This document shows positions 9,412 through 45,839 of a DNA stretch of 64,000 bases, piece by piece; position 1 is the first letter of the stretch; each line of letters begins with the position of its first letter. Position numbers and translations under genes: made by a program. The DNA is taken from sequence record NC_017972.1, one strand, 5' to 3'. Below the pieces are notes generated by a model that was not told where the DNA came from, made no database searches, and worked only from the letters and a program-made list of their open reading frames with translations.

Positions 9412-9611
9412 CAGCAGAAAATTTGCGTACAGAAGTAACGGAAACGGTCGATGTTGCTACTGTGGAAATCGAAGCTTCGTTGCGTATGCTGCGCGGTGCC
9501 CAAGTTAAAGCAAATGCGGCTGGTACTGGTGGTGGCCGGGAAATCGCACTGGCGATTACCAACATCGAAACGGGTTTGCTGTGGCTGCGCGAAGGTGCGC
9601 AGAAAATCTGA
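9408..9611 (+). CDS. Small helical-hairpin protein, Acb2/Tad1-like
   Basis: GREIALAITNIETGLLWL resembles the RExxxAxTxLExxxxW hairpin of Tad1/Acb2-type sponges. Confidence 0.5.
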   Translation: MTAENLRTEVTETVDVATVEIEASLRMLRGAQVKANAAGTGGGREIALAITNIETGLLWLREGAQKI

Positions 9612-9624
9612 TGTAAACGAGATT

Positions 9625-9646
9625 GGGGCCTAGTGCCCCTTTCTTC
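9625..9646 (+). terminator. Intrinsic terminator
   Basis: GGGGC-ctagt-GCCCC followed by TTTCTT. Confidence 0.65.
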
Positions 9647-9669
9647 ATATGGGACGCAAGGATCACGAA

Positions 9670-10230
9670 ATGACAGAATCCATTTTGATTATTGAGAAGA
9701 CCGTAGAAGGTGACAACCTGCGGGTTTTCCGTGTGGCAATTCCCGAGCACCGCAAGCGCTCACAAATAATTTCCTACGGTGCGTTTCGCACACGGGAATT
9801 GAAGCGCGCCTTCCCAACGTTGCGCAAAGGCTACGCGGGCAAGATGAAAACGAATGCGCCTGCGGCAGTCTGGTACAACGTGCAATGGGATTGGGAAAGG
9901 GAATACGATCTTTTCCAAGGCGCATGGGAACGCACCTGCCTGATAGGTAAGCGCGAAGTTCCAGAACGCGCCACGAATAAAAACCAAATCAGACTCCACG
10001 ATCATTTGTTCGACATTATCGACGTGCCTGATTTGTTCCAGTTCTATGCGTTGATTGGTCACGCGTATCGAACGCAGAAATACACACACGAAAGCTTGGC
10101 ATTCCGAGCGCAAACCGATCCAATGGTGAGAACCGAGGTTATACGCGCTGGTCGGAAAACACGACCCCAGCTAGGCACTAGGCTTGACACGCCAGCCCCG
10201 TCTGTGGTAGGCGCGGGCCAGCCGCTCTAG
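9670..10230 (+). CDS. Hypothetical protein
   Basis: ORF of 186 aa with an AAGGA RBS; alternative start at 9649. Confidence 0.7.
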   Translation: MTESILIIEKTVEGDNLRVFRVAIPEHRKRSQIISYGAFRTRELKRAFPTLRKGYAGKMKTNAPAAVWYNVQWDWEREYDLFQGAWERTCLIGKREVPERATNKNQIRLHDHLFDIIDVPDLFQFYALIGHAYRTQKYTHESLAFRAQTDPMVRTEVIRAGRKTRPQLGTRLDTPAPSVVGAGQPL

Positions 10231-23947: not shown

Positions 23948-23960
23948 AATACTGTAAATA
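23948..23960 (+). promoter_or_regulatory. AAWACTGTAAATR motif copy 5
   Basis: AATACTGTAAATA in an AT-rich intergenic region. Confidence 0.6.
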
Positions 23961-30213: not shown

Positions 30214-30607
30214 AAAGTATTTGAAAGGTGGGCAGATTGTCCGCCTCGAAAAGAATTATCCGTACATTCGCGACCTCGGTTCTCGCCTGCTGAGACTGCC
30301 GATAATCAAACGCGGAAATTTTGTGGACAAGCTTCCACAGAGTGACGACGCGCTGATCGCCTTTGCACAGCAACGGAAATTCGATCTGTACTACGGCTAC
30401 AAAATCTGTAAATTAAATGGAAGGGACAGCCTATTGGCGTCCCTTTTGTGCGTTGATAAGAGCGGCTGTGTGGTCGAAGACAAGTCCAGCCGCCTCGACA
30501 ACACGTCCTGCTACGTCGGCATTAAGGTGCCAGAAGCGGACATTAAATCGCGAACTTACGCAACAAAATTCAGTCGCGCGGACTATCTGCCAAAGGGTTA
30601 TCAATGA
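30182..30607 (+). CDS. Hypothetical protein with a tag-like N-terminus (MKLYLTTA)
   Basis: First member of the N-terminal motif array. Confidence 0.7.
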   Translation: MKLYLTTASAKKYLKGGQIVRLEKNYPYIRDLGSRLLRLPIIKRGNFVDKLPQSDDALIAFAQQRKFDLYYGYKICKLNGRDSLLASLLCVDKSGCVVEDKSSRLDNTSCYVGIKVPEADIKSRTYATKFSRADYLPKGYQ

Positions 30608-32289
30608 ACGTTCATATTGCTGTTGCGGCGGCATCCGCGCCCGGTAGTGCGGACGCATTTATCAAGCTTCTGGTCGCCATTTACAAGGCGCCCGAATACA
30701 ACTACGGCACCAACTTTTGCACCAAAATGCAGAAATGGCTGGAACAAGCGCAGCCCTTTATTGACCATTACAACATGAAGCGCGTATTCGCTAAAACGCT
30801 GAGCCTGTTGGTTGCCGGTGAAGACGTTGCTGACGAGAAATATTCGCTGATTGTTAACGGCTGTTTTGACACGCTGAAAGCCAAGAAAAAGTCGTTTGAT
30901 AAAGACTCCAGCCTGAGCAAACAGCAACTGCAATTCCTGACCGACGTGCGCCTTGCCCGCAACGGTTCGGAAGCGGCGACCAAGCGCCTGATGCAGCACG
31001 CTGGATACTTCAAAGATTCGCATATCTCGAAAATGTTCCTGCATGAAGACGAACACACCGAGACGACCACGCAAGATGCGTTGTATCAGAGGCTTGAAGA
31101 GCATGTGAAAAAGTACGGCAAGGTGAAAGGCAATGTCATGCCGGAAACCGTGCTGGAAGCGTGGCGAGAAAAAGCGAAGAAACTCGGCAACAACCTGACC
31201 GAGCATCAAGAATATCTGGACATGCGCCGCCAGCGTAAAGCCATTGCCGATAAAGCAATTGCCAACATCGTGCGGGCGTCGGGTGAACACATTGTCGATG
31301 TGGATGTAATCCGCAATCAAATGGGCAACGTGCAGTACGATATTCCTGAATGGTTCGTCGGCAAGATGGACGACAAAGGAAACTACTACACGACCGATGG
31401 TTTGCAACTGCTGAATAAACCAGTTGGTGCGGGTTCGATGAACAAGAACTACACGCCGGGTTCCACGGTTTATTACTGCCAGTACAAGGCCCCGTTTGCC
31501 CAATCGACCACGAACGTTTACACAATTGCAGCGCGTACCGAAGGCCGTGTGCAATCGTTCAACATCGTGCAAGACATGCTGCCTGACCTGCAAAAATATG
31601 TGCGGAAATGGCTTCCTGATTTGGCGAAAGGTCCGGGTTCGCTGCGTGGCGTTGCTGCCGCCGTGTGTGAAATCATTTATCAGACCAGTGCGCGTATCGG
31701 TTCGACCCGTGCGGCCACTGCTGGCGAAACCACTTACGGTATTTCCACGCTGCTGCGCAAGCATCTGAATTTCAATGATCAGCGCGTGATCATGAAATAC
31801 TTGGGCAAGAAGGCCGGTGCGCAAAAGCATGTGATCAAATTCAATGATCAACGGACCGAGATTCTGCATGGCGTTCTGGTGGAATTCCTGCACGAATTGA
31901 AACCGGCGAATCATGTGTTTACTTTCCGTGGCAAGCCGCTGTCGAACTCGCAGGTGAACGGCTATCTGCGCGACCTCGGATTCCCCGAAGGATTTACGAT
32001 TCACAAGTTCCGCAAATTGCGGGGTACGGCGATGGCTAAAGCGCTTATGGATAAATGCCCGTTCGGTGCCCGCGCACGCGAAGCCGACGTAAACAAATGG
32101 ATCGAAACTCAGTGCTTGAAAATCGGTAAAGAGCTGGGCCATATGAGCGGGGAAAACGTGACCGCAACTACGGCCATTGCAAACTACATCGACCCGTCTG
32201 TTTTCCTGCCGGTCTACGAGAAAACCAATACTCGCCCGAACAGCAAAATTCAGAAGGCCATTGACCTCGCCACGAAGAGTACAGAATAA
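30604..32289 (+). CDS. DNA topoisomerase IB-like protein with a long N-terminal extension (tag MNVHIAVA)
   Basis: SARIG, YGISTLLRKH, YLGKK, VNGYL, HKFRK, LGH and NYIDP carry the R-K-R-H-Y pentad. Confidence 0.82.
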   Translation: MNVHIAVAAASAPGSADAFIKLLVAIYKAPEYNYGTNFCTKMQKWLEQAQPFIDHYNMKRVFAKTLSLLVAGEDVADEKYSLIVNGCFDTLKAKKKSFDKDSSLSKQQLQFLTDVRLARNGSEAATKRLMQHAGYFKDSHISKMFLHEDEHTETTTQDALYQRLEEHVKKYGKVKGNVMPETVLEAWREKAKKLGNNLTEHQEYLDMRRQRKAIADKAIANIVRASGEHIVDVDVIRNQMGNVQYDIPEWFVGKMDDKGNYYTTDGLQLLNKPVGAGSMNKNYTPGSTVYYCQYKAPFAQSTTNVYTIAARTEGRVQSFNIVQDMLPDLQKYVRKWLPDLAKGPGSLRGVAAAVCEIIYQTSARIGSTRAATAGETTYGISTLLRKHLNFNDQRVIMKYLGKKAGAQKHVIKFNDQRTEILHGVLVEFLHELKPANHVFTFRGKPLSNSQVNGYLRDLGFPEGFTIHKFRKLRGTAMAKALMDKCPFGARAREADVNKWIETQCLKIGKELGHMSGENVTATTAIANYIDPSVFLPVYEKTNTRPNSKIQKAIDLATKSTE

Positions 32290-32290
32290 A

Positions 32291-32569
32291 ATGAAAATCA
32301 TGCTCGCTACTGCCGCCGAACCTGTTTACTCGGTTGATAAACTACCGAAAGGCTCCAAAGTTATCGGCTACGAAGTTTACCGCCAAGGCACTAAAAACCT
32401 GCTGGGCAAAGGCGCTGCCGGTACTGCGAAACAGGCAATTAAACGTATCGATTTTCATGCGAATACCGGCATGACGGTTGACCTTGCGATTATCGCAATG
32501 GACGGCGAACACAAAATCAGCTTAACAGAAGCGTACAAGCTGAAAGATACCGGTGCCGTAAAAGTTTAA
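32291..32569 (+). CDS. Small protein with tag MKIMLATA
   Basis: ATG at 32291, one base after the upstream stop. Confidence 0.7.
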   Translation: MKIMLATAAEPVYSVDKLPKGSKVIGYEVYRQGTKNLLGKGAAGTAKQAIKRIDFHANTGMTVDLAIIAMDGEHKISLTEAYKLKDTGAVKV

Positions 32570-32596
32570 TCAATTCGCCCCGAAGAGCAAAAGCAA

Positions 32597-32983
32597 ATGG
32601 ACATATACGAAAACGGCGTATGTATTGGTCATGCTGATGAACCGGGTGAACGCGGGCCTGCTGGTGTGGCCGGTATGCCGGGGGCAGATTGGAATGAGGG
32701 GAAGGGCGGCGACAGAGGCCCGTGCGGTCCTGACTGTCACGCGAAATGCAAATGTCGTAAACGCTACGATGTTCTGCTAATTAGCGGCGAAGAGTACGGA
32801 CGCATGATGGCCAAGAAAATGATCGCCGCCATGCAGGAACAAGGCACAGGAATTCACGGTCGGGATTTCGGTCCTGCCGGTCCGTTAGGGATGACTGCCG
32901 CAGATGCAAAACATCATTTGCCGTGGTACGTAGAGCATAATATGCGTGCGCAGCGGCGTGCGCAGAGGAATAAAAAGGTATGA
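32597..32983 (+). CDS. Small protein with short collagen-like G-X-Y stretches (no tag)
   Basis: GERGPAGVAGMPG, GDRGPCGP, GPAGPLG. Confidence 0.65.
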   Translation: MDIYENGVCIGHADEPGERGPAGVAGMPGADWNEGKGGDRGPCGPDCHAKCKCRKRYDVLLISGEEYGRMMAKKMIAAMQEQGTGIHGRDFGPAGPLGMTAADAKHHLPWYVEHNMRAQRRAQRNKKV

Positions 32984-33894
32984 AAATCCAACTGGCACTC
33001 GCCAAGGATCAAGGCTTTGCATTTCACGGCACTAGCTACCGAAATGCAGCCGCGATTATTGAAACCGACAAGCTGCAACTGTCGCAGGTTGCAGGCAAGG
33101 AAGCAGAAGCGCAATTCGCTAAGCATCCTTTCTTTTTGAGTGTGCGTCGCAACCGCCAACTGACTGCGACGAATTTTTATGATGTGACTATCGAATTCAA
33201 AGAGCAGGCGCTGCAATCGCGTATGCAACGGGAATCGGTGGATTACTGGGGCCACGTCGAAGGCAAAGGCAACAGCATCGAACAGGAAGACCGTTATTAC
33301 TACGCGAAACCTATTCTGAAAAACGCTGTTAAACTGATCCGTGCCTTGCATATCAACCTGAACAATTATGATCCGGCGCGTATCGGCTCCGCCATGCGTA
33401 AAATGATCGTGACTGCAAAGAAACTCGGCATTCAGGTTTATCTGTACCGCGACGAAAAAGCCTACAACCGCGTAGACAAGCGCAAGACTGTGCCTCTTTC
33501 CGAAATGGAATACGGTCCAAAAGCCGCGAACATTTTCCGCGAACGAACTGCCGAAGAGGCGGAGCGCGAAGCAGAAGATCAAATGTTCAAAGGTATGCGC
33601 TACAAGCGCGCCCAGTACCCGGAAATCAAGTTCGTTGTGGATATCCTGCACAGCGGTACGGCACCGGAAAACAAAGAAGCGAAATATCAGACCGAACGCT
33701 TTGGCTATCGCCTGTCCGGCCATGAACTTGCTTCGCAGCTGGGCAACATCCTGCATAATGCTTCCCATAGCCCGCACGGCAAAGAGAAACAGTGGGCTGC
33801 ACGCGTTCAAGAATGGATGCGCAAGAATGGGAAAAACGTGGAAGAAACCGCGTACCATATTCGCGAGATTATCCAGCAGAGGGATGGCCGATGA
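32980..33894 (+). CDS. ADP-ribosyltransferase-like protein, paralogue A (tag MKIQLALA)
   Basis: FHGTS, FFLSVRR, VDYW, EQEDR. Confidence 0.6.
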   Translation: MKIQLALAKDQGFAFHGTSYRNAAAIIETDKLQLSQVAGKEAEAQFAKHPFFLSVRRNRQLTATNFYDVTIEFKEQALQSRMQRESVDYWGHVEGKGNSIEQEDRYYYAKPILKNAVKLIRALHINLNNYDPARIGSAMRKMIVTAKKLGIQVYLYRDEKAYNRVDKRKTVPLSEMEYGPKAANIFRERTAEEAEREAEDQMFKGMRYKRAQYPEIKFVVDILHSGTAPENKEAKYQTERFGYRLSGHELASQLGNILHNASHSPHGKEKQWAARVQEWMRKNGKNVEETAYHIREIIQQRDGR

Positions 33895-34067
33895 TCAAGC
33901 CGATTCGTTTGAGTGACCTTAACAAGATTTACGAGAACGAAACGCCAGAGGAAAAGCAAAAGCGTCTGGAAGCAAATCAGGCGCGGCTTGATCGCTGGGT
34001 TAGCGAATGGAAAGCATTCAGGGAAAAACATCCTGACATTGCTGATCGAATGGTGTGCGCCGCATGA
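33891..34067 (+). CDS. Small hypothetical protein (58 aa, no tag)
   Basis: MIKPIRLSDLNKIYE...; ATGA overlaps at both ends. Confidence 0.65.
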   Translation: MIKPIRLSDLNKIYENETPEEKQKRLEANQARLDRWVSEWKAFREKHPDIADRMVCAA

Positions 34068-35011
34068 AAATTCAACTCGCTGTCGCAGGCTCTTCTGTCC
34101 TGTATCACATTACCGAAATGATCAACGCCGTAAGGATTCTGCAAGGGGATAGTTTCATACTGACCCCTACGGCATTGCGCAAGACGGAAATCGTCCACGG
34201 TGGCGGCAAACCTCATTACTTTATGTCGTTTGCTCGCACGCCGCATAACCTGTTCTTCAAAACGAACCAGTCCGGGCGCAACAAAGACTACGTGATTTTT
34301 GTGTGCGACGGGCAGAAACTCGCCTCCAGTTACAAAATCAAACCTGTAGATTTCCTGAGCAATCCAGAATCGGCTGGCGACATTGACGACGAATGGAAGG
34401 GCGGCGACGAAACCGAAGACCGCTTAATCACCACGAAGCACTCCATTCCGGCGATTCGCTATATCAAGGAAATTCACTTTTCCTCCGGTCATGAAGTCGG
34501 TATGACGCCAATGGTTCGCCAGCTGGCGCTGACTGCAAAGCTTCACGATATGAAGCTGTTCCGCTACGAAACTTTTGCCGATTTGATCAAGATGAATCGC
34601 CGAAAAGCTTTGCCTCTGGATATGCGCAAAGCAACGCCGCGCAGACGATTCGGCCAGAAAAAGCGCGATTTTGGCTTGGGGCCTTCTCGCGATTCGCAGC
34701 GGTTCGGCCTCAAAACGTGGTGGCGTGCGCTGAAAATGCCCGTTAAACCCGGCGATAAACAAGCGCAGTTTATGGGCAACACAAAGAATATGGATTCCTA
34801 TTCTTTCCGTGAAGACCTGTGGGAATCCATGTTCGGCGGTGAGGATGGCGGCAAATCCGAGTTCGGCCTAAACATTGCGCGTCGTCGCCTCGGCACCATG
34901 ATTGACACCGGGCGCGCTGATCCATACGGGCAAAAGCTGGTCGAATACATGAAACGCAAAAACATGCAGCCCGCAGAACTCTTCGATCAAATTCGGGATA
35001 GGTGGAAATAA
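34064..35011 (+). CDS. ADP-ribosyltransferase-like protein, paralogue B (tag MKIQLAVA)
   Basis: LYHIT, YFMSFAR, FVCDGQKL, PVDF, ETEDR. Confidence 0.6.
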   Translation: MKIQLAVAGSSVLYHITEMINAVRILQGDSFILTPTALRKTEIVHGGGKPHYFMSFARTPHNLFFKTNQSGRNKDYVIFVCDGQKLASSYKIKPVDFLSNPESAGDIDDEWKGGDETEDRLITTKHSIPAIRYIKEIHFSSGHEVGMTPMVRQLALTAKLHDMKLFRYETFADLIKMNRRKALPLDMRKATPRRRFGQKKRDFGLGPSRDSQRFGLKTWWRALKMPVKPGDKQAQFMGNTKNMDSYSFREDLWESMFGGEDGGKSEFGLNIARRRLGTMIDTGRADPYGQKLVEYMKRKNMQPAELFDQIRDRWK

Positions 35012-35400
35012 TGAGCAAAGATTCTAGCCGTTATGGCGTTGGTCAGGTTGTCTACATGCACCCGGCGGTCGATTCGCTGACCCCTGAGCAGGTTCAAAAA
35101 CACGGTATCATGGCAAAAGTTGTAGGCGTGAATTTCATGGCTACTGCTGTGTCCTATGAGCTGGCGCTGGATGTTGCAGCACCGGGCGCCGAGCCGCAGT
35201 TCTACGAGCAAATTCCTGTCGCCGCTGTGGATTCGTATTTCGTCGTTAGCGCTGCCGATCTTGCCAATCGCGGCGCCGATGAATATCAATCCTATGCCTC
35301 TTCGCGTACCGAACGCAGCGATAAAGAAATTCGCACCTTTGCTTCGCGGTTCCGCATGATTGAATCCGACTTGGCAGAAATGCGAGGCGGCGCACACTGA
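35011..35400 (+). CDS. Small hypothetical protein, possible SH3-like barrel (no tag)
   Basis: YGVGQVVY...AKVVGVNF...SYEL; TAATG coupling. Confidence 0.65.
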   Translation: MSKDSSRYGVGQVVYMHPAVDSLTPEQVQKHGIMAKVVGVNFMATAVSYELALDVAAPGAEPQFYEQIPVAAVDSYFVVSAADLANRGADEYQSYASSRTERSDKEIRTFASRFRMIESDLAEMRGGAH

Positions 35401-35759
35401 TGAAAATCCAGCTAGCGGTTGCGTCCACGGCTTTACCTTATGAGGAAGGGCGTTCGCATGATATTAAAATAGGGGATTCCACTATCTCCTACAGCAAAGG
35501 GTACGGCAATGACTACATAGAGTTGGGTAGTTTGCGCACGCCCGCCTCTAAACGTGGGAACGGTAGTGCGCGAAAAGCAATGGTGGAATTCCTGAAAAGA
35601 ACTGACGCCATGCAAATGGACGTGGAACTGCTAGCCTCCCCTTTGGACAAGAAAACCAAAATTGGAAAGCTTGTGGCGTTTTATCAATCTTTTGGATTTG
35701 AATTGACCGGTAGGCACAACATGGCCTACGAGCCTTATATGCGGAGGCCCCATAAGTGA
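35400..35759 (+). CDS. GNAT acetyltransferase-like protein (tag MKIQLAVA)
   Basis: SKRGNGSARKAM acetyl-CoA loop and LVAFYQSFGF. Confidence 0.75.
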   Translation: MKIQLAVASTALPYEEGRSHDIKIGDSTISYSKGYGNDYIELGSLRTPASKRGNGSARKAMVEFLKRTDAMQMDVELLASPLDKKTKIGKLVAFYQSFGFELTGRHNMAYEPYMRRPHK

Positions 35760-36208
35760 AAATCCAGCTGGCGGTGGCGACCGCAAAAGTTTATTACCAC
35801 GGCACGAAAAAGAAGTTTGAAAAGTTCTCTGAGTATCGACCGGCGTTCTTTTCACCTAGTTTGGCTTACGCGCAAGAGTATGGGCCTATCATCATGAAAG
35901 CCCATTTGGATATTCGCCATATTTTCGATACGCGCCACGACAAGCGTGCGGTCGAGATTTACAACGAGTATTTCATACCGTCCGGGCTTGCGCATGCGGA
36001 TGTTGAGCCTATCAAACTGGGCGAACCTGTCGATATGCTGCATGCGGATGAATTGTGGTCGTACTTGGCGGTCCCTGAATACCCGGCGCCGCACTACGAC
36101 GGCATTGCCGTTAGCGAACATGGTGTTAGCTCTTTGGGTGACAAATTCAAAGATGCAGATATCGCCTACGTTCCTCTGCATCCACAACAAATCCATTTGG
36201 TGAAATAA
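35756..36208 (+). CDS. ART-PolyVal-like ADP-ribosyltransferase (tag MKIQLAVA)
   Basis: YYHGT..KFEKF, AFFS..LAYAQEY, YDGI, YVPLHPQQI. Confidence 0.65.
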   Translation: MKIQLAVATAKVYYHGTKKKFEKFSEYRPAFFSPSLAYAQEYGPIIMKAHLDIRHIFDTRHDKRAVEIYNEYFIPSGLAHADVEPIKLGEPVDMLHADELWSYLAVPEYPAPHYDGIAVSEHGVSSLGDKFKDADIAYVPLHPQQIHLVK

Positions 36209-37124
36209 TGAAAATCCAGCTGGCTGTTGCTGGATCGTCCGTGCTCTATCATTTGATCTACATGGAGCACGCGATTACAGCGCTGAAAAACGACAAGTTC
36301 AAACTGGCCCCGGTTAATGAGGGCATCGAATCAGAGTTCGGTACTGCCCAGTATTTCCTGAGTCTGGCGCGTTCTAAGCATTCCGATTACTTCCTAAAAG
36401 AGGCTGGTGATACCCACGTCGTTTTCGTGCTCGACGGGCAGAAAATGAATGCGAATTACCAGATCAAGGCCGTCGATTACTGGCACAAGCAGGCATTCGT
36501 CGATGACGACGAAAAAGAAGATCGCCTGTTCGCAAACAAAATGTACATTCCGTGCATTCGCTACATCAAAGAAATCCACTTCATGAAAGAAAATCCGAAG
36601 TGGAAGGTTAACGACTCGCTAACGCTGGCACTGCTAGCCAAACGTGCTGGGATTCCGCTGTTCCAGTATTCCAGCATGAACGCTTTCCGCATGTTGGATA
36701 AACGCAAGACAATCAAACTTGAAGTTTCTGACAAAAAGAAACGCAAGTTCGGCACCAAAGTTTCCCAACCGTACACGACCGGCGAACTGGAGGCGTGGTA
36801 CGTTGCATCGCAAATTGTTTTTAAAGGCAGCGAAACGCATTACACGCAATACCTGAAAGGCGCCCGCACCAAGCAAGAACAAAGCAGCCGCGATATGATT
36901 GCCCGTCGTATCAAAACGATGATCAGCATGCACGACGTTGGCAGCCAGCCGGTGCGCGATTTCAACCGGCTGCTGGATGCTGCCAAGGAAGGGCCAGACT
37001 ACAATTCCTTGAGAAAATTAAACGTGTCAAACGTAGGCTGCGCGTCGATACCAAAGGCTTTTTGGATTATGTGCGCAAGCGCTGGATGACGCCCGAAGAA
37101 CGCGAACTACATGGACTAGAATAA
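36208..37124 (+). CDS. ADP-ribosyltransferase-like protein, paralogue C (tag MKIQLAVA), with an apparent 1-nt frameshift near 36991
   Basis: LYHL, YFLSLAR, FVLDGQK, VDYW, EKEDR. Frame 0 stops at 37089, but the -1 frame continues with paralogue-like sequence to a TAATG junction at 37124. Confidence 0.6.
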
Positions 37125-39007
37125 TGCGAATTCAACTCGCAGTAGCGGCGGTGCCTTTGAGTATCGCCCGCCCATACGTCAAAGGATGGAACCGGTTCGG
37201 TATTGGCGTGCAGGCCGTCCGCCGAACCATGCCGAAAGGAACCCGAGGCTATAACAAAGGGTATCGCCTGTATCTGCCGATCAAACCGGGAAAACGACCA
37301 AAAGTTGTGGTGCCGAAATTCATTGATCGAGCTATTTCTTCTGCTGGTTACAGAGTCGAGGATTACATTACCGGCATTGCGGTGGACATGGCCGGTAAGC
37401 GTCGAATAAAAATCGGCAAATTGCTCAAAGACGAAGAGCTGCGCAATCAGTTTGCAAACGACCCGCAGCGCGCTGCATTCAAAAACGATTATGTCTGTGT
37501 GATTTCCGCGCATCCTTACGATGTAATCGGTATGTCTACCGGTCGCCGCTGGGACGATACTTCCTGTATGAGATTGGCGCAGCCGGGTGTGCGCGGTGGC
37601 GCTTTCCAATCCACAGTCAAACACGACGTTGCCGAGGGCACGTTGGTTGCCTACGCGATTTCCCCGAACGATAAAAATATCAACAAACCGCATGGCCGTT
37701 TGTTGATTAAACCGTTCTACGATGAACACCGCAATATTCTGTTCCGCGTAGAAACCACGGTCTATGGTACGCCGGTTCCGGGCTTTGTCGAGACGGTGCA
37801 GCGCTGGCTGAAAAAGGTTAACAAAGACGCAGCGCAAGGCATTTACAAAATTGCGGATGGCCTTTACGACGATGGCGTCGGCGAAGCGTTTATCAACGTT
37901 GACGTAGATAAAAAGTCGGATGCAGAGTTGCTTGATTATTGGCGGAAATCCGACCACGCAGATCGCCGGATGCTGATGCGTTCTGATATTCGCTGGGCAA
38001 AACCTGCAATTCTTTTGACCATTGAGAATAATCAGGACGATCTAGACGGCTTGTCCTACGCGCTTGCGACCGTGTTGACCAGAAGCCATATTCTCTATGA
38101 TCAACCAACCTCCAAAAAGATTGCGAAAATCATAGACGAGGTTATGCCAGAAGACGTTGCACAACAGCTGATGTTGGAAATGCTGTCGCACGGTGGCGAA
38201 AAGGTGGTGAGATATTCCACCAAACTCAAGGCCGCAGCAGACACGTACTATGCGTATGATCCTAACAAGAAATTGCGACTTAGTGTGGCGGTGCAGTACG
38301 CCGCTTATGATCCGCGTTTCCTTGGCAACGTTGAAAGCCTTACTTCCGACGACGCACGCGGTATCTCTGGATTGGCACGGTCGTTTATTCGCGGCTCTTC
38401 CAAAGATACAAAAGAATTCCGCCGCTCCAAAATGGAAGGCTCTAAGCTTCTACGCAGGACGCTGGCTGTAATTGCCGCTGCGCTGATGAAAATTCCAAAG
38501 TCGCACAAAGACAAAGGCGAGCACATTGAGAAAATGGCGCGTTGGTTTAAAACCGACGAATTCTACGACGCTCAAGTGTGGAAAGTTCTACAGACTCGCG
38601 CCCTCGGTATGGTTAGCCGCAGCATCGACATAAGCAGCGGCAACCTCGCTGTCGGTTTGTGTGCTCTTGACGATTCGTGGCCGCGCCAGATTAACGAACT
38701 GGTCGAATCCACCGAGTACATCGAAGAAAGCCCCGAAGCGATGCAAAACGTTTGCAATTGCCGCAACACTGCCGCGCAAGGGCAATTGATCGTTAAGCTT
38801 CAAGCTGGTGGTTATATACGCGATCCCGGCTGGCTGCGCGAACATTCGTACATTATCGGCTTGTTGGAAACCATCGTCAAAGACGAAGATGGCGAATGGG
38901 ATGGCACCCGTATCCAGACAATGGCGCGCAATTCGCTGGATAAACTTGCCAAAGTCGCGCCAGCAAATGGAAGACATTTTCAACGAACTGAAAGACGCCG
39001 GATTTGA
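37124..39007 (+). CDS. Large paralogue 1 (tag MRIQLAVA; conserved HPYD-GMSTGR-SCM domain)
   Basis: Shares an N-terminal domain of about 270 aa with 39063 and 41797. Confidence 0.8.
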   Translation: MRIQLAVAAVPLSIARPYVKGWNRFGIGVQAVRRTMPKGTRGYNKGYRLYLPIKPGKRPKVVVPKFIDRAISSAGYRVEDYITGIAVDMAGKRRIKIGKLLKDEELRNQFANDPQRAAFKNDYVCVISAHPYDVIGMSTGRRWDDTSCMRLAQPGVRGGAFQSTVKHDVAEGTLVAYAISPNDKNINKPHGRLLIKPFYDEHRNILFRVETTVYGTPVPGFVETVQRWLKKVNKDAAQGIYKIADGLYDDGVGEAFINVDVDKKSDAELLDYWRKSDHADRRMLMRSDIRWAKPAILLTIENNQDDLDGLSYALATVLTRSHILYDQPTSKKIAKIIDEVMPEDVAQQLMLEMLSHGGEKVVRYSTKLKAAADTYYAYDPNKKLRLSVAVQYAAYDPRFLGNVESLTSDDARGISGLARSFIRGSSKDTKEFRRSKMEGSKLLRRTLAVIAAALMKIPKSHKDKGEHIEKMARWFKTDEFYDAQVWKVLQTRALGMVSRSIDISSGNLAVGLCALDDSWPRQINELVESTEYIEESPEAMQNVCNCRNTAAQGQLIVKLQAGGYIRDPGWLREHSYIIGLLETIVKDEDGEWDGTRIQTMARNSLDKLAKVAPANGRHFQRTERRRI

Positions 39008-39062
39008 TGACGAAGAGGACGACGAAAACGGCCTCTTCGATGATGAGGATTAAGGGGAACCT

Positions 39063-41726
39063 ATGAAAATTCAACTAGCCACCGCAGCCGTAGCCTTACG
39101 CACTGCAATTCGCTACAGCAAAAACTGGAATAAAAACTCGCCGACCGTGCGCCTGTTGCAGTCGATGATGCCCGATGTTCCCGGCCAGAAAAAAGGTTAT
39201 CGTTATTACATCGACCTGAAACGCGATAACAAGCACTATTCGATTCCGCCTGCTGTAAGAAGCGCGGTGAAAAATGCCGGTTTTGTTATCACTGATTACC
39301 TCGCCAAGAAATGCGTAAAGGCCTCCGACAAAGAGCAGAAAAACGTATTCAACATTGGCAAGGTTATCGCCAAAGACCCGCACGCCAAAGCCGCGTTCGA
39401 CAACGATCCGCAATTGCAGAACAGTAAAACCAGCGAAATCAAAATCGTTGTTTCCTGCCACCCATACGACATTATCGGTATGTCCACTGGCCGGGACTGG
39501 GATAAACAATCCTGTATGCGACTCGACGACGGATATCGAAACGTCGGTGACGCTGGCGCCTACCACAGACATGTAGAGCACGACGTGGCCGAGGGCACAT
39601 TGGTGGCGTATGCAATTCGCGCCTCCGATACCAATATTCAAAAGCCGCTGGGCCGTTGCCTGATTAAACCTTTCCTGAATTCGGACGGGTACGAAGAGGG
39701 TGGTGAACATCACATTTTATTCCGTCGCGAAACTGCTATTTACGGAAACGGCGTGCCGGGTTTTGGTCGCGCATTAAATCTGTTTTTGCATAAACTGAAT
39801 GCCAAGGTTCCGTCCGGGTATTATGAGCGTGTACAGAGTCTGTACGATGACGGCGTAGGCGATGACCATCACCACGACGCTGACAGAGCACAAAGCGACA
39901 AAATCGCCGTGAGTGATGTTGTAGAAGATAATCGTTTGATTATCCCATACATGGATCAGATATTTGAGGAAGATGCTTCGGTGCGAGAGGCGTTAGCGCC
40001 CCTGCGAATGAAAGGTCTTGAGCTGCACGATACGGAAGTTACACATCTTGCCGGAATGTTCCGAGAAGATGATGAAGTAAAAGACGAATTGGATTATCTG
40101 ATTCGCAGCGGTCAAGCCACGACTGCGATTTACAAGCTGGCAAAAGCGTTGGACCTTACCCATAAGAATCAGCCATCTAACTATCGCGATATGTCCCGCA
40201 ACGAGCTTGTCGGCCAAGCGACGCTGAAAGACGAAAAAGCGATGGTGGAAATCCTGAATCGTTTGAATAACGAAGAGACTTCCAAATCTGATGCGGATAT
40301 GATTTATACCAGCTGGTGCAAATCCCGCCTGCCTCTGCCGTCGGCTGATCTACTGCTGAAATATCCAAAGGTTACAGTGAAGCTGGCAAGTCTCGCTAAA
40401 GCCAGTATGAACCTGCGTGCCTTCTTTGATGATGGCGACTTTGACGAATTCGCTTTTGCTTTCCGTGACCTGAATGTCGATCCGGCTTCCTACGGCGATC
40501 ACCGCCCGGAACCGGAAGATTTGCTGAATATGATGTACGCGATTGGTCACTACGAGCTGGCGCTGTGCTGCATCTACGAAGAGTACAAATGGTTGGGCGT
40601 CGTGATTTACGACACGGTAAACCACGACTACGCCGACCGCTTCGACAACCGCAAATTGTACCGCGCATTCAGCAAATTGTCCGATTCCAATATGGACGAT
40701 TACATGGATCGTATACGTGAGAAAATCTTTGAACGCATTATGGCGGGCAGCCGCCTCCAGTTCAAAGACGCAAAACCAGACGTACTGGCGCAGTATCTGA
40801 ACGATCCTGATTTGCTGCGTAACAAGGATCGGTGGGAACCTACGCACATTCATCGTTTGATTGATTTCAGCCTGCCACTAGCCATGATGCTGGACATTCC
40901 GAACGACAGTCTACTGCCTCGCGTTTTGCCTGAGTATTACAAGGCCTTGGTTGCCTACGAAGGCGAGCCGCTGGAAGTCCAATCGGTAAGCATGGAATGG
41001 GCAATGCAGCTGCTAGTTTACGCTAACAAGCTGACCAAAGAAAAACCGGATATTGCCAGCAAGATTGCCGAGTTTGAACCGCTTGATACCGCCACCCTGA
41101 TTGAGAAATATCGGGTACGTAATGCGAAGACATACAACTACGAAAAAACCCTTGCTGCTTTCTGCCTAAGTCTGAAAATCGGCCAAGCTGTAGACGGAGA
41201 ACGCCTTAGCGTGATGGACGATCCGGTCTATATGGCAACGGATTTCGATACTGCGGTTATTACCGCACCTCCGCATAAACTGGCGGAAAACATCCACACA
41301 ATTCTCAACAATCTCATTGAGCGTTCGGATATTCGTCAAATTGTGCGGATGCTGGAAACCGTATCGGAGTCCCTGAATTACCAGCCGGATTTCACGTCGC
41401 CCGACGACTACGCCAACGATAAAATGGAAGAAGAAGTCGTAGACGATTTCGACTACCATATTGTTCGTGAGCAATACGAAGAGGAAGGCCGCGATAGACT
41501 GGAAACTGAACTTGCGGCATTCAGGAAAGTTGCCGAGGCCCACGAAACCCTGCGCGAATTCGTTGGTTACGATGATTCCGAAGAAACATTGGATGTAGAT
41601 TTGCCAAACGTTTCTAAGGAAGATTTGGATCAGGCAGGCGGCGATATTTCCATGCTCATTCAAACCGTCAATGGCAACCAATACAGCATTGATGACTCGA
41701 TTATCGAAGCCGAAGGTATGCTGTAA
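39063..41726 (+). CDS. Large paralogue 2 (tag MKIQLATA)
   Basis: Same N-terminal domain, unrelated helical C-terminus. Confidence 0.85.
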   Translation: MKIQLATAAVALRTAIRYSKNWNKNSPTVRLLQSMMPDVPGQKKGYRYYIDLKRDNKHYSIPPAVRSAVKNAGFVITDYLAKKCVKASDKEQKNVFNIGKVIAKDPHAKAAFDNDPQLQNSKTSEIKIVVSCHPYDIIGMSTGRDWDKQSCMRLDDGYRNVGDAGAYHRHVEHDVAEGTLVAYAIRASDTNIQKPLGRCLIKPFLNSDGYEEGGEHHILFRRETAIYGNGVPGFGRALNLFLHKLNAKVPSGYYERVQSLYDDGVGDDHHHDADRAQSDKIAVSDVVEDNRLIIPYMDQIFEEDASVREALAPLRMKGLELHDTEVTHLAGMFREDDEVKDELDYLIRSGQATTAIYKLAKALDLTHKNQPSNYRDMSRNELVGQATLKDEKAMVEILNRLNNEETSKSDADMIYTSWCKSRLPLPSADLLLKYPKVTVKLASLAKASMNLRAFFDDGDFDEFAFAFRDLNVDPASYGDHRPEPEDLLNMMYAIGHYELALCCIYEEYKWLGVVIYDTVNHDYADRFDNRKLYRAFSKLSDSNMDDYMDRIREKIFERIMAGSRLQFKDAKPDVLAQYLNDPDLLRNKDRWEPTHIHRLIDFSLPLAMMLDIPNDSLLPRVLPEYYKALVAYEGEPLEVQSVSMEWAMQLLVYANKLTKEKPDIASKIAEFEPLDTATLIEKYRVRNAKTYNYEKTLAAFCLSLKIGQAVDGERLSVMDDPVYMATDFDTAVITAPPHKLAENIHTILNNLIERSDIRQIVRMLETVSESLNYQPDFTSPDDYANDKMEEEVVDDFDYHIVREQYEEEGRDRLETELAAFRKVAEAHETLREFVGYDDSEETLDVDLPNVSKEDLDQAGGDISMLIQTVNGNQYSIDDSIIEAEGML

Positions 41727-41748
41727 AACAATAATTTGATAGTAAACC

Positions 41749-41778
41749 AAGGGGATTTGGCGACAAGTCCCCTTTCTT
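41749..41778 (+). terminator. Intrinsic terminator
   Basis: AAGGGGATTTG-gcga-CAAGTCCCCTT followed by TCTTT. Confidence 0.75.
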
Positions 41779-41796
41779 TACATTAGGGACGCACAA

Positions 41797-44496
41797 ATGA
41801 AAATTGCGCTCGATTTTATGGGCACCGCAGCCGTTTCTATGCGTAGCGCGTTGAAGTACCGCCGCAATTGGAACAAGGAAAGCCCAACCGTAAAGCTTTT
41901 GCGCACACTGATGCCAAAAGGCTCAAAAGGTTTTCGTGTTTATTCCCCTATCGGCGCAGGTGCCCACGTTAACCATAACGTTCCCCGTGTTCCGGTCGCT
42001 GTGCGTTTAGCCGTACAGCGCGCAGGTTTCCGCATTACCGATTACCTTGCAAAGAAGTGCGTTAAACGTTCCGACAAAGAGCAGAAAAACGTATTCAACA
42101 TTGGCAAGGTTATCGCCAAAGACCCGGTGGCGAAGGCAGCATTCGACAATGACCCGCAGCTGCAAAACAGTTCGACTTCGGAATTTACGCTGGTTGTTTC
42201 GTGCCACCCATACGACATTATCGGTATGTCTACCGGTCGTGATTGGGATAACACTAGCTGTATGCGGTTAAAAGACGACCGCAAAGGCTATAGCGACGGC
42301 TTTAACTCGCGTTATCTTAATCACGATATCTCTGAGGGCACATTGGTTGCGTATGCAATTCGCTCCAATGACCAGAATATTACTGCACCACTGGGCCGGT
42401 GCCTGCTCAAGCCTTTCCTACGCACCGATGACGACGGCAAACAGCTGGTTATGTATCGTAGGGAAACCAAGATTTACGGCAACCCTGTTCCCGGTATGCC
42501 GGAAGCGTTAAGTGTATTTCTTCGCCGCCTGAATGCTGGCGTTCCGACCGGCACGTATTACATGAATTCCCTTCTGTATAACGACGGCGTGGCCGACGTG
42601 CATGAGCACGACGAAGAAAAAGAAGGCAGCAGTAAAATCGATTGGCTGCACGCCAACGAATATGAGATTTTCCGCGACCGTCCGCAAATGTTCCCAGCAT
42701 ACGTGGAATGGATGGTCAAAAACATTAAAGCTGGCGAGGCCCCGGCCAGCAGCGCGGAAACGATGATCGTCACCTTTGCCGAAAACGTTCCGGCCCGCTA
42801 CGTCAAGCAAGCGGCACGCATGATTGATGATCGCGATTTGCTGATTGCGTTTGCTGACCATATGGTGCTTTCGTCCAGTGGCTCTGACGCGAAAACCTAT
42901 AGCAAATTCTGTGCGTCCAAAACTTTCCGCAAACGCTTGGCAGCTGTTGCCGACGAAGCCTATATGCCGGAAAGCTACGCTGTCCTGTCGCACCTTTCCG
43001 CGAAGTATGCACATAAGTTCTTTGAAGAAGAGAAAAGCCGTGGGGCACTAGACGACCACCGCGATTTGGTTAATCTGGCAATGAATACCATTTATGGTTA
43101 CAACAGCCTGACCAAAACCGACATTGAATCGCTGCCGATGCTGCATTCTCTTGTTTATCACTTTGCCAATTATGTGCGCGCCGCGTCCGTTTATGGCATG
43201 ACTGATTATCAGGAAAACGCGCACAAATACCTGTCGATTCTGGCCGAGCCGCAGCCGCTGCCAATCGAAGCTTATGTGTCTTTGCTGGATTACCTCCGAG
43301 ACGATAAAGCAAACGCGCCTATCCTGTTTGCGATGCTCATGGAAGCGATCAAAAACGACAAAGCAAATCAAATTGATTTGTGCCTGACTAGCGGCTTCGA
43401 CACTAAGCTTATGGCGTCGTGCTTGTACGAACGTCGTATGCGCCGCGCCTTGCTGAATCAGCGGAAAAACCTGAGTGCAAAAGGCGCAGAAATGCTGGCC
43501 GATGGCGTTGCGCAGGTTTATACGGATAGCGACGAAGACGAAAACCACAACGCGACCAGCGCGGCCCGCGAACTGACTGCCTACATTCAGAAAAATACGT
43601 TCGATGCTGTGTCGGCAGAAAACGCCCGCACCTTGCAATACAGCGCGCCAGAACTTATTCCGTATCTGTTTGCATCCGGTGTGCAGATCGACCGTGAAAA
43701 CGTCCTGACTGTGTTGGGCAATCAAATGTTTGCGAGGGCTGCTAGAAACATGCCGCGCAACGAGTCGAACAAAAACATCCTGAAAATCGCCGATACCTTT
43801 GTGGGTATTATTTCACCAAACACGGATTTCCAACGCAGAAGGAAAGATCGTCCAGAACCGAGTGACGAATTCCCAGCCGTGGTGGACCCGGAGGTTTTGG
43901 AGCTGATTCGTAAATCGCTGAACGATTTGCCCGCCTACACTTACGACCTAGACAAATACCCGCAGTTGTACAGCACGCAATTCTACAAGGAAGAGCGCCC
44001 GAACCTTTACACTCTGTACACGTCGGGCAAGCTGCAATCTGTGCTAAAACATATGGATTCGGAAGAGTCCGTAGCACTGATGCGTGCGATTGCTAGCGAT
44101 CTTTCTGGTTTATCGCCAGTGCTCGCAACCATGCGTAACGATGATCGAATGCTGGCCGATTCCTACGCCATGACGCAGCTGATGGGCCTTATGCGTTCGG
44201 CTAGTAAATCCGAGGCGATTGATGAATCCGCAAAAACGGTGCAATCCATTGTAAACGCTGTGCGTAATCTGGAAGCGATGGTGCGTGACGTATTCCCACC
44301 AGTTGGCGCGCATATCGACCAATGGCGCAAAGTTGTTCCACAGCTGGCTGATGCGGAATATCCGTTTGCAGATATCGCCGTAAAAGACATGCTGGAAGGC
44401 GTGCAATCGTTGAAGAAACAGACACGGATTTTTGAATTGCTCGATTCCGAGCTGGCGCAATACTACCCGGACGATTGGCCGAAGGTGACTGCATGA
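41797..44496 (+). CDS. Large paralogue 3 (variant tag MKIALDFMGTAAV)
   Basis: Same N-terminal domain, unrelated helical C-terminus. Confidence 0.85.
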   Translation: MKIALDFMGTAAVSMRSALKYRRNWNKESPTVKLLRTLMPKGSKGFRVYSPIGAGAHVNHNVPRVPVAVRLAVQRAGFRITDYLAKKCVKRSDKEQKNVFNIGKVIAKDPVAKAAFDNDPQLQNSSTSEFTLVVSCHPYDIIGMSTGRDWDNTSCMRLKDDRKGYSDGFNSRYLNHDISEGTLVAYAIRSNDQNITAPLGRCLLKPFLRTDDDGKQLVMYRRETKIYGNPVPGMPEALSVFLRRLNAGVPTGTYYMNSLLYNDGVADVHEHDEEKEGSSKIDWLHANEYEIFRDRPQMFPAYVEWMVKNIKAGEAPASSAETMIVTFAENVPARYVKQAARMIDDRDLLIAFADHMVLSSSGSDAKTYSKFCASKTFRKRLAAVADEAYMPESYAVLSHLSAKYAHKFFEEEKSRGALDDHRDLVNLAMNTIYGYNSLTKTDIESLPMLHSLVYHFANYVRAASVYGMTDYQENAHKYLSILAEPQPLPIEAYVSLLDYLRDDKANAPILFAMLMEAIKNDKANQIDLCLTSGFDTKLMASCLYERRMRRALLNQRKNLSAKGAEMLADGVAQVYTDSDEDENHNATSAARELTAYIQKNTFDAVSAENARTLQYSAPELIPYLFASGVQIDRENVLTVLGNQMFARAARNMPRNESNKNILKIADTFVGIISPNTDFQRRRKDRPEPSDEFPAVVDPEVLELIRKSLNDLPAYTYDLDKYPQLYSTQFYKEERPNLYTLYTSGKLQSVLKHMDSEESVALMRAIASDLSGLSPVLATMRNDDRMLADSYAMTQLMGLMRSASKSEAIDESAKTVQSIVNAVRNLEAMVRDVFPPVGAHIDQWRKVVPQLADAEYPFADIAVKDMLEGVQSLKKQTRIFELLDSELAQYYPDDWPKVTA

Positions 44497-44921
44497 AAAT
44501 TCAATTAGCTATTGCAACCGCTAGCGACGACATGAATGCGCGGGTTAGTACCGACGTGCGGGCAGTAATTGCCAAGTCGTACAGCTCGCTATTTTCCAAT
44601 GTATTTTATCAGGTGCTGGATATTCCCGACCGCAGCAAATCGGATATCCGTCTGGTAAAAGAAATGGAAGACGACTACATTCCTGTCGTGGTGACTGTCG
44701 AAGATCAAGACCATAACAAGGTCACGTTTGTTTTCGCGGCTCACCGGATGCAGCCAATGTTGGGTAACGCAAACCCAACTAGAGGCTGGCTGTTGCACGA
44801 AAATAAAGTCGATGAATTCACGCTGGAATCGCGAGTAATCAAGGTGCGCGGCATAGCGTTTGCAATTGCCGCAATGGTTGCCCGGCGTGCCTCCCGCTTT
44901 ATCGATTTTGGCAATAACTGA
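44493..44921 (+). CDS. Hypothetical protein (tag MKIQLAIA)
   Basis: ATGA overlap with the upstream stop. Confidence 0.75.
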   Translation: MKIQLAIATASDDMNARVSTDVRAVIAKSYSSLFSNVFYQVLDIPDRSKSDIRLVKEMEDDYIPVVVTVEDQDHNKVTFVFAAHRMQPMLGNANPTRGWLLHENKVDEFTLESRVIKVRGIAFAIAAMVARRASRFIDFGNN

Positions 44922-45145
44922 TGAATATATTGCTCACCGTAGCCAAGTCCGGTTCTGCTGAGCGTTGGGACGCGTTGCCCTCTTCTGCTGAAAGATTTGA
45001 TAAGGCAAAAGAGGGCAGGGCGCTCAAAGCTAGTGGGAAAAAGAAATCGAAAAAGAAGCGCACACGTTCGGGCATAATTGACGCACCTACAACAGGTACG
45101 GAAATGCGCCAGACGGACGTTAGCTCAAGGGTAGGATTCCCCTAA
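44921..45145 (+). CDS. Small basic protein (tag MNILLTVA)
   Basis: TGATG coupling; Lys-rich. Confidence 0.65.
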   Translation: MNILLTVAKSGSAERWDALPSSAERFDKAKEGRALKASGKKKSKKKRTRSGIIDAPTTGTEMRQTDVSSRVGFP

Positions 45146-45402
45146 TGAAACTGACAATCAAAGGTCGCGCTCGCCAAGACGACACCACGGAAAACCCCAA
45201 GCATACTGGGGTTCGTGCTGCCGATTGGGAAGACGACGACAAAATGATCAAGAACATGCCGCCCGAAAAGAAGAAATCTTTGCTGCGAAATCAGCAAGAT
45301 ATTCCGAACAAAGGCGCGACCATGCCGCACGACTACATTGAGAAAATGCACGTCTCTAAATCGAACTGGCTTAGCCGGTTAGAGCGAGGGCGTGAACGAT
45401 GA
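45145..45402 (+). CDS. Small hypothetical protein (85 aa)
   Basis: TAATG coupling. Confidence 0.65.
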   Translation: MKLTIKGRARQDDTTENPKHTGVRAADWEDDDKMIKNMPPEKKKSLLRNQQDIPNKGATMPHDYIEKMHVSKSNWLSRLERGRER

Positions 45403-45839
45403 AAATCATGCTTGCTGTTGCGTGCGGCCTGTGCAACGTCGAGATTCCAGAGGACGCGTTTTCTTACGTCGAACCGACTAAAGCTAAGCGCGTAAAAGGT
45501 ATCAGTGAGGACGCAGTAAAAAGCCTGCTGGACAACGAGCTGGCGCGTGCGTCTGATGCCACTTCAAAGCAGCAACACGCTGACCACAAAAAGGACGGCG
45601 CGCTGCAAAAGAAAGTGAAGACGGCACAAGATGCAAAGATGAAAAAGCAGCAAAGCTTGCGCGCTATGCAGTCACAGCTGGTTGCCCTCAACGGCAAGCG
45701 CCCAACTGATCCGAAAAAGATTCAGAATTGGACTAAACGCCGCCGCGCTTTAGCCGAAAAGATCACAGAGAAAAGAAACTCTATTCGCCTTTCCGATTCC
45801 CGTGTCGCTGGCATGAGAAAGGAAGTCCGTGAAAACTAA
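45399..45839 (+). CDS. Basic coiled-coil protein (tag MKIMLAVA)
   Basis: ATGA overlap; K/R-rich helical composition. Confidence 0.7.
   Translation: MKIMLAVACGLCNVEIPEDAFSYVEPTKAKRVKGISEDAVKSLLDNELARASDATSKQQHADHKKDGALQKKVKTAQDAKMKKQQSLRAMQSQLVALNGKRPTDPKKIQNWTKRRRALAEKITEKRNSIRLSDSRVAGMRKEVREN

Follow-up and report, generated by a model that had tools for sequence, protein, structure and literature searches.

Three tagged paralogues of Pseudomonas phage Lu11 as candidate capsid-delivered members of the ADP-ribosyltransferase superfamily

What is encoded by three neighbouring genes of a giant phage whose products open with almost the same eight residues, and where might these proteins act? 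The question is raised by Pseudomonas phage Lu11, a jumbo myovirus of 280.5 kb whose host is P. putida, and in particular by a stretch of 64,000 nucleotides of record NC_017972.1 (hereafter the window), which corresponds to bases 124001-188000 of JQ768459, a window position being the record position minus 124000; in a megablast search, 32980-37124 matches this phage at 100%. Every gene in question between Lu11_0200 and Lu11_0206 is annotated in the record as 'hypothetical protein'. A first-pass annotation had taken three of the products, gp200, gp202 and gp206, for paralogues resembling ADP-ribosyltransferases (ARTs) with a hybrid catalytic signature. The answer favoured here, to which we give about equal measures of belief and doubt, is that they are phage paralogues of the ART superfamily, addressed by the common octapeptide (the tag) and delivered by the capsid. 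The genes and their key residues, in window positions, are as follows:

32980..33894, plus strand: gp200 (Lu11_0200), 304 amino acids; tag at residues 1-8, ART-like domain at about residues 12-175, helical C-terminal domain.
33025-33027, 33133-33150 and 33280-33294, plus strand: key residues of gp200, namely H16, FLSVRR and EQEDR, checked at these coordinates.
34064..35011, plus strand: gp202 (Lu11_0202), 315 amino acids; tag, ART-like domain, basic C-terminal domain (net charge +13).
34106-34108, 34220-34237 and 34409-34423, plus strand: key residues of gp202, namely H15, FMSFAR and ETEDR, checked at these coordinates.
36208-37089, plus strand: annotated open reading frame of gp206 (Lu11_0206), 293 amino acids, which runs out of frame after 36999.
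36208..36999, plus strand: first piece of gp206 (frame 0), 264 amino acids; the tag and the ART-like domain in full, with the greater part of the C-terminal domain.
36250-36252, 36355-36372, 36511-36525 and 36577-36579, plus strand: key residues of gp206, namely H15, FLSLAR, EKEDR and H124.
36999..37124, plus strand: second piece of gp206 in another frame, 41 amino acids; conserved basic C-terminal helix, stop at 37122-37124.

The paralogy is borne out by BLASTP, with 35% identity between gp202 and gp206 (E 7e-38), 27% between gp200 and gp206 (E 3e-15) and 24% between gp200 and gp202 (E 3e-9), gp200 being the most divergent of the three. The motifs first reported are present as well: a strand-1 His preceded by an aromatic residue (FH in gp200, YH in gp202 and gp206, with the His at 33025, 34106 and 36250), F-[LM]-S-x-x-R (FLSVRR, FMSFAR and FLSLAR, respectively), VD(Y/F)(W/L) (VDYW in gp200 and gp206, VDFL in gp202), E-[QTK]-E-D-R (EQEDR at 33280, ETEDR at 34409 and EKEDR at 36511) and, in two of the three, xDG(Q)K (CDGQK in gp202 and LDGQK in gp206, not in gp200). 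The length of about 305-315 amino acids that had been given to all three is right for gp200 and gp202, while in gp206 about 305 residues are reached only across a frameshift, treated below.

Prediction of the fold, which had been put forward as the check that could overturn the ART assignment, favours it. The full-length AlphaFold model is of moderate quality (pLDDT 76), and a model of the domain built from an alignment of 118 sequences reaches a pLDDT of 88.2 and a pTM of 0.85, with alternating strands and helices. The top 13 Foldseek matches of this domain model in the PDB are all ART-fold proteins, and 12 of these 13 are also the best supported by Foldseek probability (0.51-1.00). The list is headed by yeast Tpt1 (7yw4, E 1.4e-4, TM-score 0.64 on the target) and includes DarT of Thermus and M. 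tuberculosis (7omx, 7omw and 7yk3, E about 2e-4 to 1e-3), as well as CC0527, cholera toxin A, Clostridium Tpt1, CteC and SopF; the rows that come after are unrelated proteins with E >0.5. The same PDB matches lead with the full-length model. In the viral structure library, members of the family itself come first; the weaker matches after them are proteins of phages G and SP-15 and, from PaBG and Bodo saltans virus, proteins described as putative RNA 2'-phosphotransferases. On these models, and with the published description of the ART fold as reference (PMC9503650), the domain of gp200, gp202 and gp206 very probably has an ART fold.

The residues that would form the active site fall where such a fold places them. 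According to DSSP, and in gp206 numbering, H15 lies in the first strand (12-18), S52 in the strand 49-54 and E104 opens the strand 104-109, the preceding loop (90-103) being modelled with low confidence; counted by the canonical ART scheme, His, Ser and ExE occupy core strands 1, 2 and 5 (beta-1, beta-2 and ARTT-loop/beta-5). In an alignment of 118 diverse domains, which mostly share 22-35% identity with gp206, S52, E102, E104 and R106 never vary. H15 and R55 are kept in 116 domains each (the other two domains having Arg in place of the His), Y154 in 114, H124 in 110 and D105 in 109. The family signature can be written [LV]-[YF]-H-x-T ... [FY]-[LM]-S-x-[ATS]-R ... V-x-F-V-x-D-G ... P-V-D-Y ... 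E-x-E-D-R ... K-E-I-H. Furthermore, in an alignment of 11 sequences of the gp200 subfamily, S54, R57, E101, E103, D104 and R105 are invariant; because even this divergent subfamily retains the same core residues, all three Lu11 copies look catalytically intact.

The signature combines features of the two main ART clades. As in the H-Y-E clade (PARP, diphtheria toxin, DarT2), the strand-1 His and the Glu are present, the Tyr being replaced by the invariant Ser, with an aromatic residue (F/Y50) two positions upstream. As in the R-S-E clade (Alt, ModA and ModB, cholera-toxin-like enzymes), an S-T-S-type motif on strand 2 (S-x-S/T/A) and a (Q/E)xE before strand 5 are found, the strand-1 Arg occurring solely in the two exceptional domains, and no curated family model of this clade is matched. 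The description of the signature as hybrid is correct with respect to these canonical triads, yet the combination has a precedent in DarT1, a guanine-specific DNA ART in which a Ser is conserved where the Tyr would stand (PMC11543638), that is, an H-S-E enzyme.

As regards the C-terminal halves, which had been described as diverged, they are indeed so, yet they are still homologous: they make up a single helical domain, conserved and basic, about 130 residues long. An iterative search joined 128 of 134 tails, and proteins of the gp202 and gp206 types have a net charge of +11 to +13 in this domain. The paralogues differ most here and in the loop that leads into ExE, where gp202 has about 11 residues more than gp206; by analogy with other ARTs, these are the regions expected to choose the substrates.

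The family to which the three proteins belong is large and phage-borne. A profile of the first 175 residues or so, searched against 1.84 billion proteins and counted as representative clusters, found 2,380 clusters at E<=1e-3, of which 1,651 also pass E<=1e-10. Members are mostly proteins of 280-320 amino acids (median 305) with the domain at the N-terminus, which begins within 25 residues of the start in 145 of 162 single-domain members. By tblastn, members were located in phages of Vibrio, Dickeya, Rhizobium, Salicola, Alishewanella and Salmonella; no family match was obtained in plasmids, and in bacterial genomes a single weak locus with a narrow alignment was returned by a short-pattern method that says little about absence. 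In giant proteins, 2-6 tandem copies are counted by hmmsearch (six in P0096, where the profile search marks eight stretches), and the domain is paired with ART-PolyVal (both occur in the same protein in P0036 and P0041) or with LysM and lytic transglycosylase (SLT) domains. Such 'polyvalent protein' architecture has been read as that of proteins injected along with the DNA (PMC5512222; PMC9503650). Among the family members there are weak Pfam echoes of known ARTs: Tox-ART-HYD1 is the second most recurrent sub-threshold match (5/118), and in P0039 a HYD1 match stands at the start of one domain copy, with a PARP match just before, and partly over, another.

The place where these proteins might act is suggested by the tag and by the genes that share it, which are given here together with the nearest upstream promoter motif:

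32980..33003, plus strand: tag of gp200, MKIQLALA.
34064-34087 and 36208-36231, plus strand: tags of gp202 and gp206, MKIQLAVA.
30604..45839, plus strand: tagged cluster, comprising gp197, gp198, gp200, gp202, gp204, gp205, gp206, gp207, gp208, gp210 and gp213.
30604-32289, plus strand: gp197, type IB topoisomerase (Pfam Topoisom_I, E 1.7e-12; PHROG 23460), with the tag variant MNVHIAVAA.
35400-35759, plus strand: gp204, tagged, 119 amino acids; its HRDY3 orthologue is annotated as a GNAT N-acetyltransferase.
35756..36208, plus strand: gp205, tagged, 150 amino acids, GTG start; match to PF18760 (ART-PolyVal) at E 1.6e-4 and 22.9 bits, below the 31.2-bit cut-off.
37124-44496, plus strand: gp207 (627 amino acids), gp208 (887) and gp209 (899), paralogues with a common N-terminal domain of about 260 residues.
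23951..23959, plus strand: ACTGTAAAT, core of an annotated 'putative middle/late promoter', the copy nearest upstream of the cluster, just after the portal gene.

MKIQLAVA or a close variant opens at least 11 open reading frames in the window, and a scan of the whole Lu11 genome finds the tag only at 154.6-169.8 kb (window 30.6-45.8 kb), always on the same strand; looser variants open gp196 (MKLYLTTA), gp209 (MKIALDFMG...) and gp211 (MNILLTVA). The cluster sits between the terminase/portal and the baseplate modules. The motif ACTGTAAAT occurs eight times in the window, against 0.25 expected (at 261, 339, 2432, 6481, 11574 and 23951 on the plus strand, and at 47936 and 51205 on the minus strand), the copies at 2432 and 11574 having no promoter annotation in the record, and from their setting the tagged genes appear to be co-transcribed with the late structural genes.

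The synonymous codon positions of the tag differ between copies, which indicates that selection acts on the peptide and led to rejection of an RNA or DNA signal; a Sec signal peptide was likewise rejected on length, the tag having, on inspection, eight residues and no hydrophobic core. Moreover, the tag varies by genome: it is MKIQLAVA in Lu11, MEMMLALA in HRDY3 and contig L014, MKVMLSLA in contig L013, and M-E-I-x-V-S-L-S in Dickeya JA11 and Erwinia Yoloswag. Tags of one genome share an identity of 0.60, as against 0.39 for tags of different genomes, a difference reached in 0 of 5000 label permutations, and this concerted variation points to a shared, co-evolving receptor. The cargo itself seems to turn over quickly, since the gp204 gene is missing from the otherwise near-identical contig L018. 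In L013, a relative contig of 275 kb, a further tagged protein of 190 amino acids (9427-9999) has a weak match to Pfam ATLF, of the anthrax lethal factor type.

An address peptide is known from phage T4, where the capsid-targeting sequence (CTS) also serves the ART Alt. The CTS is a conserved N-terminal peptide carried by otherwise diverse internal proteins (PMC3012670), and the corresponding pattern in Lu11, one short N-terminal peptide common to otherwise unrelated proteins, is seen in 11 genes of a single cluster. The Lu11 proteins resemble Alt and the T4 internal proteins in their proposed late synthesis and N-terminal address peptide, and Alt, ModA and ModB in S-x-[STA] on strand 2, ExE before strand 5 and occurrence as phage-encoded paralogue sets. 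In contrast, the sequence of the tag is unrelated to the T4 CTS, strand 1 bears His (116/118) and not Arg, and no Pfam Alt/VIP2-type match is obtained; the three proteins are members neither of the Alt/Mod group nor of any curated ART family.

Taken together, a mechanism can be proposed in which gp200, gp202 and gp206 would belong to a large, uncurated, phage-borne ART clade, each of the three consisting of the octapeptide tag, an ART domain (about 165 residues) and a basic helical part (about 130 residues). NAD+ would be held by His15 on strand 1 and by F-L-S-x-x-R on strand 2, and catalysis would fall to Glu104, at the start of strand 5, which forms with Glu102 the pair known from ExE enzymes, one residue lying between the two; NAD+-dependent transfer by the three proteins is probable. 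The target would be chosen by the variable loop before ExE and by the C-terminal domain, and for this reason the host molecules that are modified probably differ among the three paralogues. The tagged proteins would be made late, alongside the structural genes, and the tag would be an address label that loads them into the capsid, as the T4 CTS does for Alt and the internal proteins, so that they would be ejected with the DNA and act at the start of the next infection. Capsid loading is suggested by the apparent late-type transcription and by the range of proteins that share the tag, among them a topoisomerase IB, one GNAT-like and one ART-PolyVal-like protein and several of no assigned function; the case for packaging stands evenly balanced.

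Several points weigh against this proposal. The Foldseek E-values are modest (1e-4), with TM-scores of 0.42-0.64, and H15, S52, E102 and E104 were placed by strand (DSSP), not by the geometry of the cleft; conserved His, Glu and Asp residues could equally build another active site. Scans of gp200, gp202 and gp206 with Pfam, NCBIfam, PHROGs and PADLOC gave nothing above noise, no Pfam or NCBIfam ART model matched them at E<=1, and searches of PDB sequences (phmmer and hmmsearch, queried with a single protein or with profiles built from 16 or 118 sequences) brought up chance hits only, the negatives for curated models and PDB sequences holding at loose cut-offs (E<=1 to 10). A link with ART-PolyVal was rejected at the sequence level, since hhalign against the gp205 family spans 18 columns, which cover the tag and strand 1 only. 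As for packaging, no virion proteome was found in the literature for Lu11 or its tagged relatives, including the Dickeya and Erwinia phages, and on inspection no obvious prohead-protease cleavage motif of the T4 type is seen in the tags. Furthermore, the JA11 homologues of the ART-like proteins have no tag and open directly with the first strand, which makes the tag a portable add-on. As to originality, the surveys of the Aravind laboratory may already have counted the family among the ARTs of jumbo phages.

The comparison with DarT and Tpt1/KptA bears on the target. DarT1 and DarT2 are ssDNA-base ADP-ribosyltransferases belonging to DarTG toxin-antitoxin systems, and Tpt1/KptA is an RNA 2'-phosphotransferase. 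Enzymes of their kind would ADP-ribosylate bases or ends of host or competitor DNA or RNA, or handle RNA 2'-phosphates, and a nucleic-acid target of this sort, which would be a variant of the tag-addressed ART proposal differing in the target only, is considered possible and rather unlikely. The two enzymes supply the closest solved structures, Tpt1 as the best single match (7yw4) and both DarT1 and DarT2 among the best; with DarT the Lu11 family shares the strand-1 His and the catalytic Glu of strand 5, and with DarT1 also the Ser at the Tyr position. The first strand, L-Y-H-x-T, resembles that of KptA-type enzymes, in the gp202 and gp206 types the C-terminal domain carries a high positive charge, and the cluster includes a tagged topoisomerase IB. 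However, ExE is typical of arginine-specific protein ARTs, and DarT has a single Glu where the Lu11 family has ExE-D-R and, in addition, a conserved basic C-terminal domain; the TM-scores to DarT are 0.42-0.52, and neither the DarT model (DUF4433) nor PTS_2-RNA, the Pfam model for Tpt1, is matched. DarT is moreover a chromosomal toxin, whereas the Lu11 proteins are phage-borne and tagged, and their neighbours are tagged phage proteins among which no Macro or NADAR partner of the DarG type is annotated. Tpt1/KptA enzymes are characterized by an N-terminal winged-helix domain joined to the ART domain and by an Arg-His-Arg-Arg tetrad; the Lu11 fold begins at residue 12, right after the tag, with no room for a winged helix and no tetrad, and its invariant Ser and ExE are not used by Tpt1. 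The ExE points to protein arginine; the structural neighbours, the Ser shared with DarT1 and the basic domain point to nucleic acid.

It could also be that the proteins have the ART fold and are never packaged, acting within the cell late in infection, the tag being recognized by a chaperone or protease of the phage, or serving as a localisation signal or translation-initiation context. The missing proteomic support, the untagged JA11 homologues and the lack of a recognisable cleavage site all suit this explanation, as does the low AlphaFold confidence of residues 1-8, which gives the tag the look of a flexible peptide. Nevertheless, we judge it unlikely: the variable synonymous sites speak against a nucleic-acid signal, the diverse cargo, its grouping in one late cluster flanked by head and baseplate genes, and the concerted tag variation fit the T4 CTS model, and homologous domains stand beside LysM and SLT cell-wall domains in polyvalent proteins. 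Still less probable is that the ART scaffold serves another chemistry, such as an NAD+ glycohydrolase, the breakdown of ADP-ribose-derived immune signals or a metal-dependent hydrolase with His, Glu and Asp, or that the proteins are inert internal head proteins. Sequence models of true ARTs do fail to match, R55, D105, R106, H124 and Y154 are conserved beyond the classic triad, and some ART-fold proteins are NADases (PMC9503650). On the other side, the invariant residues sit exactly on the strands that bear catalytic residues in ARTs, four invariant polar residues over 118 such divergent sequences would not be expected of inert proteins, and depletion of NAD+ would presumably hurt the phage itself.

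Phage-borne and packaged ARTs as such are well known, and ARTs have been reported in over 40% of jumbo phages (PMC9503650). What appears to be new is a very large clade outside the curated libraries searched, the H-S-ExE-D-R signature and a genome-specific address tag. A broader thesis, which we consider doubtful, would hold that Lu11-like jumbo phages fill their capsids with a swappable arsenal of enzymes by means of a co-evolving octapeptide, and that the H-S-ExE family (about 2,400 clusters) is an undescribed ART clade bridging H-Y-E and R-S-E and modifying nucleic acids rather than proteins; the arsenal would then consist of the three H-S-ExE ARTs, the ART-PolyVal-like protein, the GNAT, the topoisomerase IB and three large proteins of no known family. 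In any case, the family could show how the H-Y-E and R-S-E enzymes relate, its substrate, once found, would add a new phage-host modification, and the common tag offers a simple handle on how a jumbo phage selects the proteins delivered with its DNA.

Among the other tagged genes, gp205 is, on its sequence, a second and unrelated ART-like cargo of the cluster, whose orthologues keep the motifs Y-H-G-T, F-F-[ST] and V-S-E. ART-PolyVal (PF18760) domains carry an H-Y-D pattern (PMC5512222). They resemble the gp206 family in occurring as single or many tandem copies in giant phage proteins, and share both proteins and the gene cluster with it; they differ from it in that its pattern is H-S-ExE, and gp200, gp202 and gp206 have no PF18760 match. 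If the tag means packaging, gp197 would be a virion-delivered topoisomerase, as is known in poxviruses. The N-terminal domain common to gp207, gp208 and gp209, whose motifs include SCHPYDIIGMSTGR and HDVAEGTLVAYAI, has no family match; it is found in Erwinia and Dickeya jumbo phages with the local tag and also in Ralstonia and Agrobacterium jumbo phages, a gp208 homologue being present in Agrobacterium phage Atu_ph07. The virion proteome of PaBG lists no relevant homologue.

The annotated frame of gp206 is shorter than its close homologues, which mostly have about 295-309 residues and commonly 305, because of the frameshift. The break, at 36999/37000, is a one-base difference in length with respect to L018, a metagenomic contig of a near-identical phage, the two being otherwise 100% identical over 191 bases. 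The 41 residues of the second piece are identical to the tail of the homologue, and its stop at 37122-37124, which overlaps the ATG of gp207, explains the end coordinate 37124 given at first pass. Since the sequence past the break shows no decay, the frameshift is likely to stem from a sequencing error that entered the 2012 record or else from a very recent mutation.

Finally, some minor observations can be added. In Dickeya JA11 (L002:7159-8921), two tandem untagged ART-like homologues lie about 5.3 kb from the gene for the prohead core protease. Upstream of gp200, the untagged gp199 (32597-32983, 128 amino acids) contains a short collagen-like Gly-x-y stretch that is kept in HRDY3. The strongest hairpin of the cluster, with an 11-bp stem followed by a poor T-run, is found between gp208 and gp209 (41749-41774), and after it a sigma-70-like pair of hexamers lies at 41777-41804.

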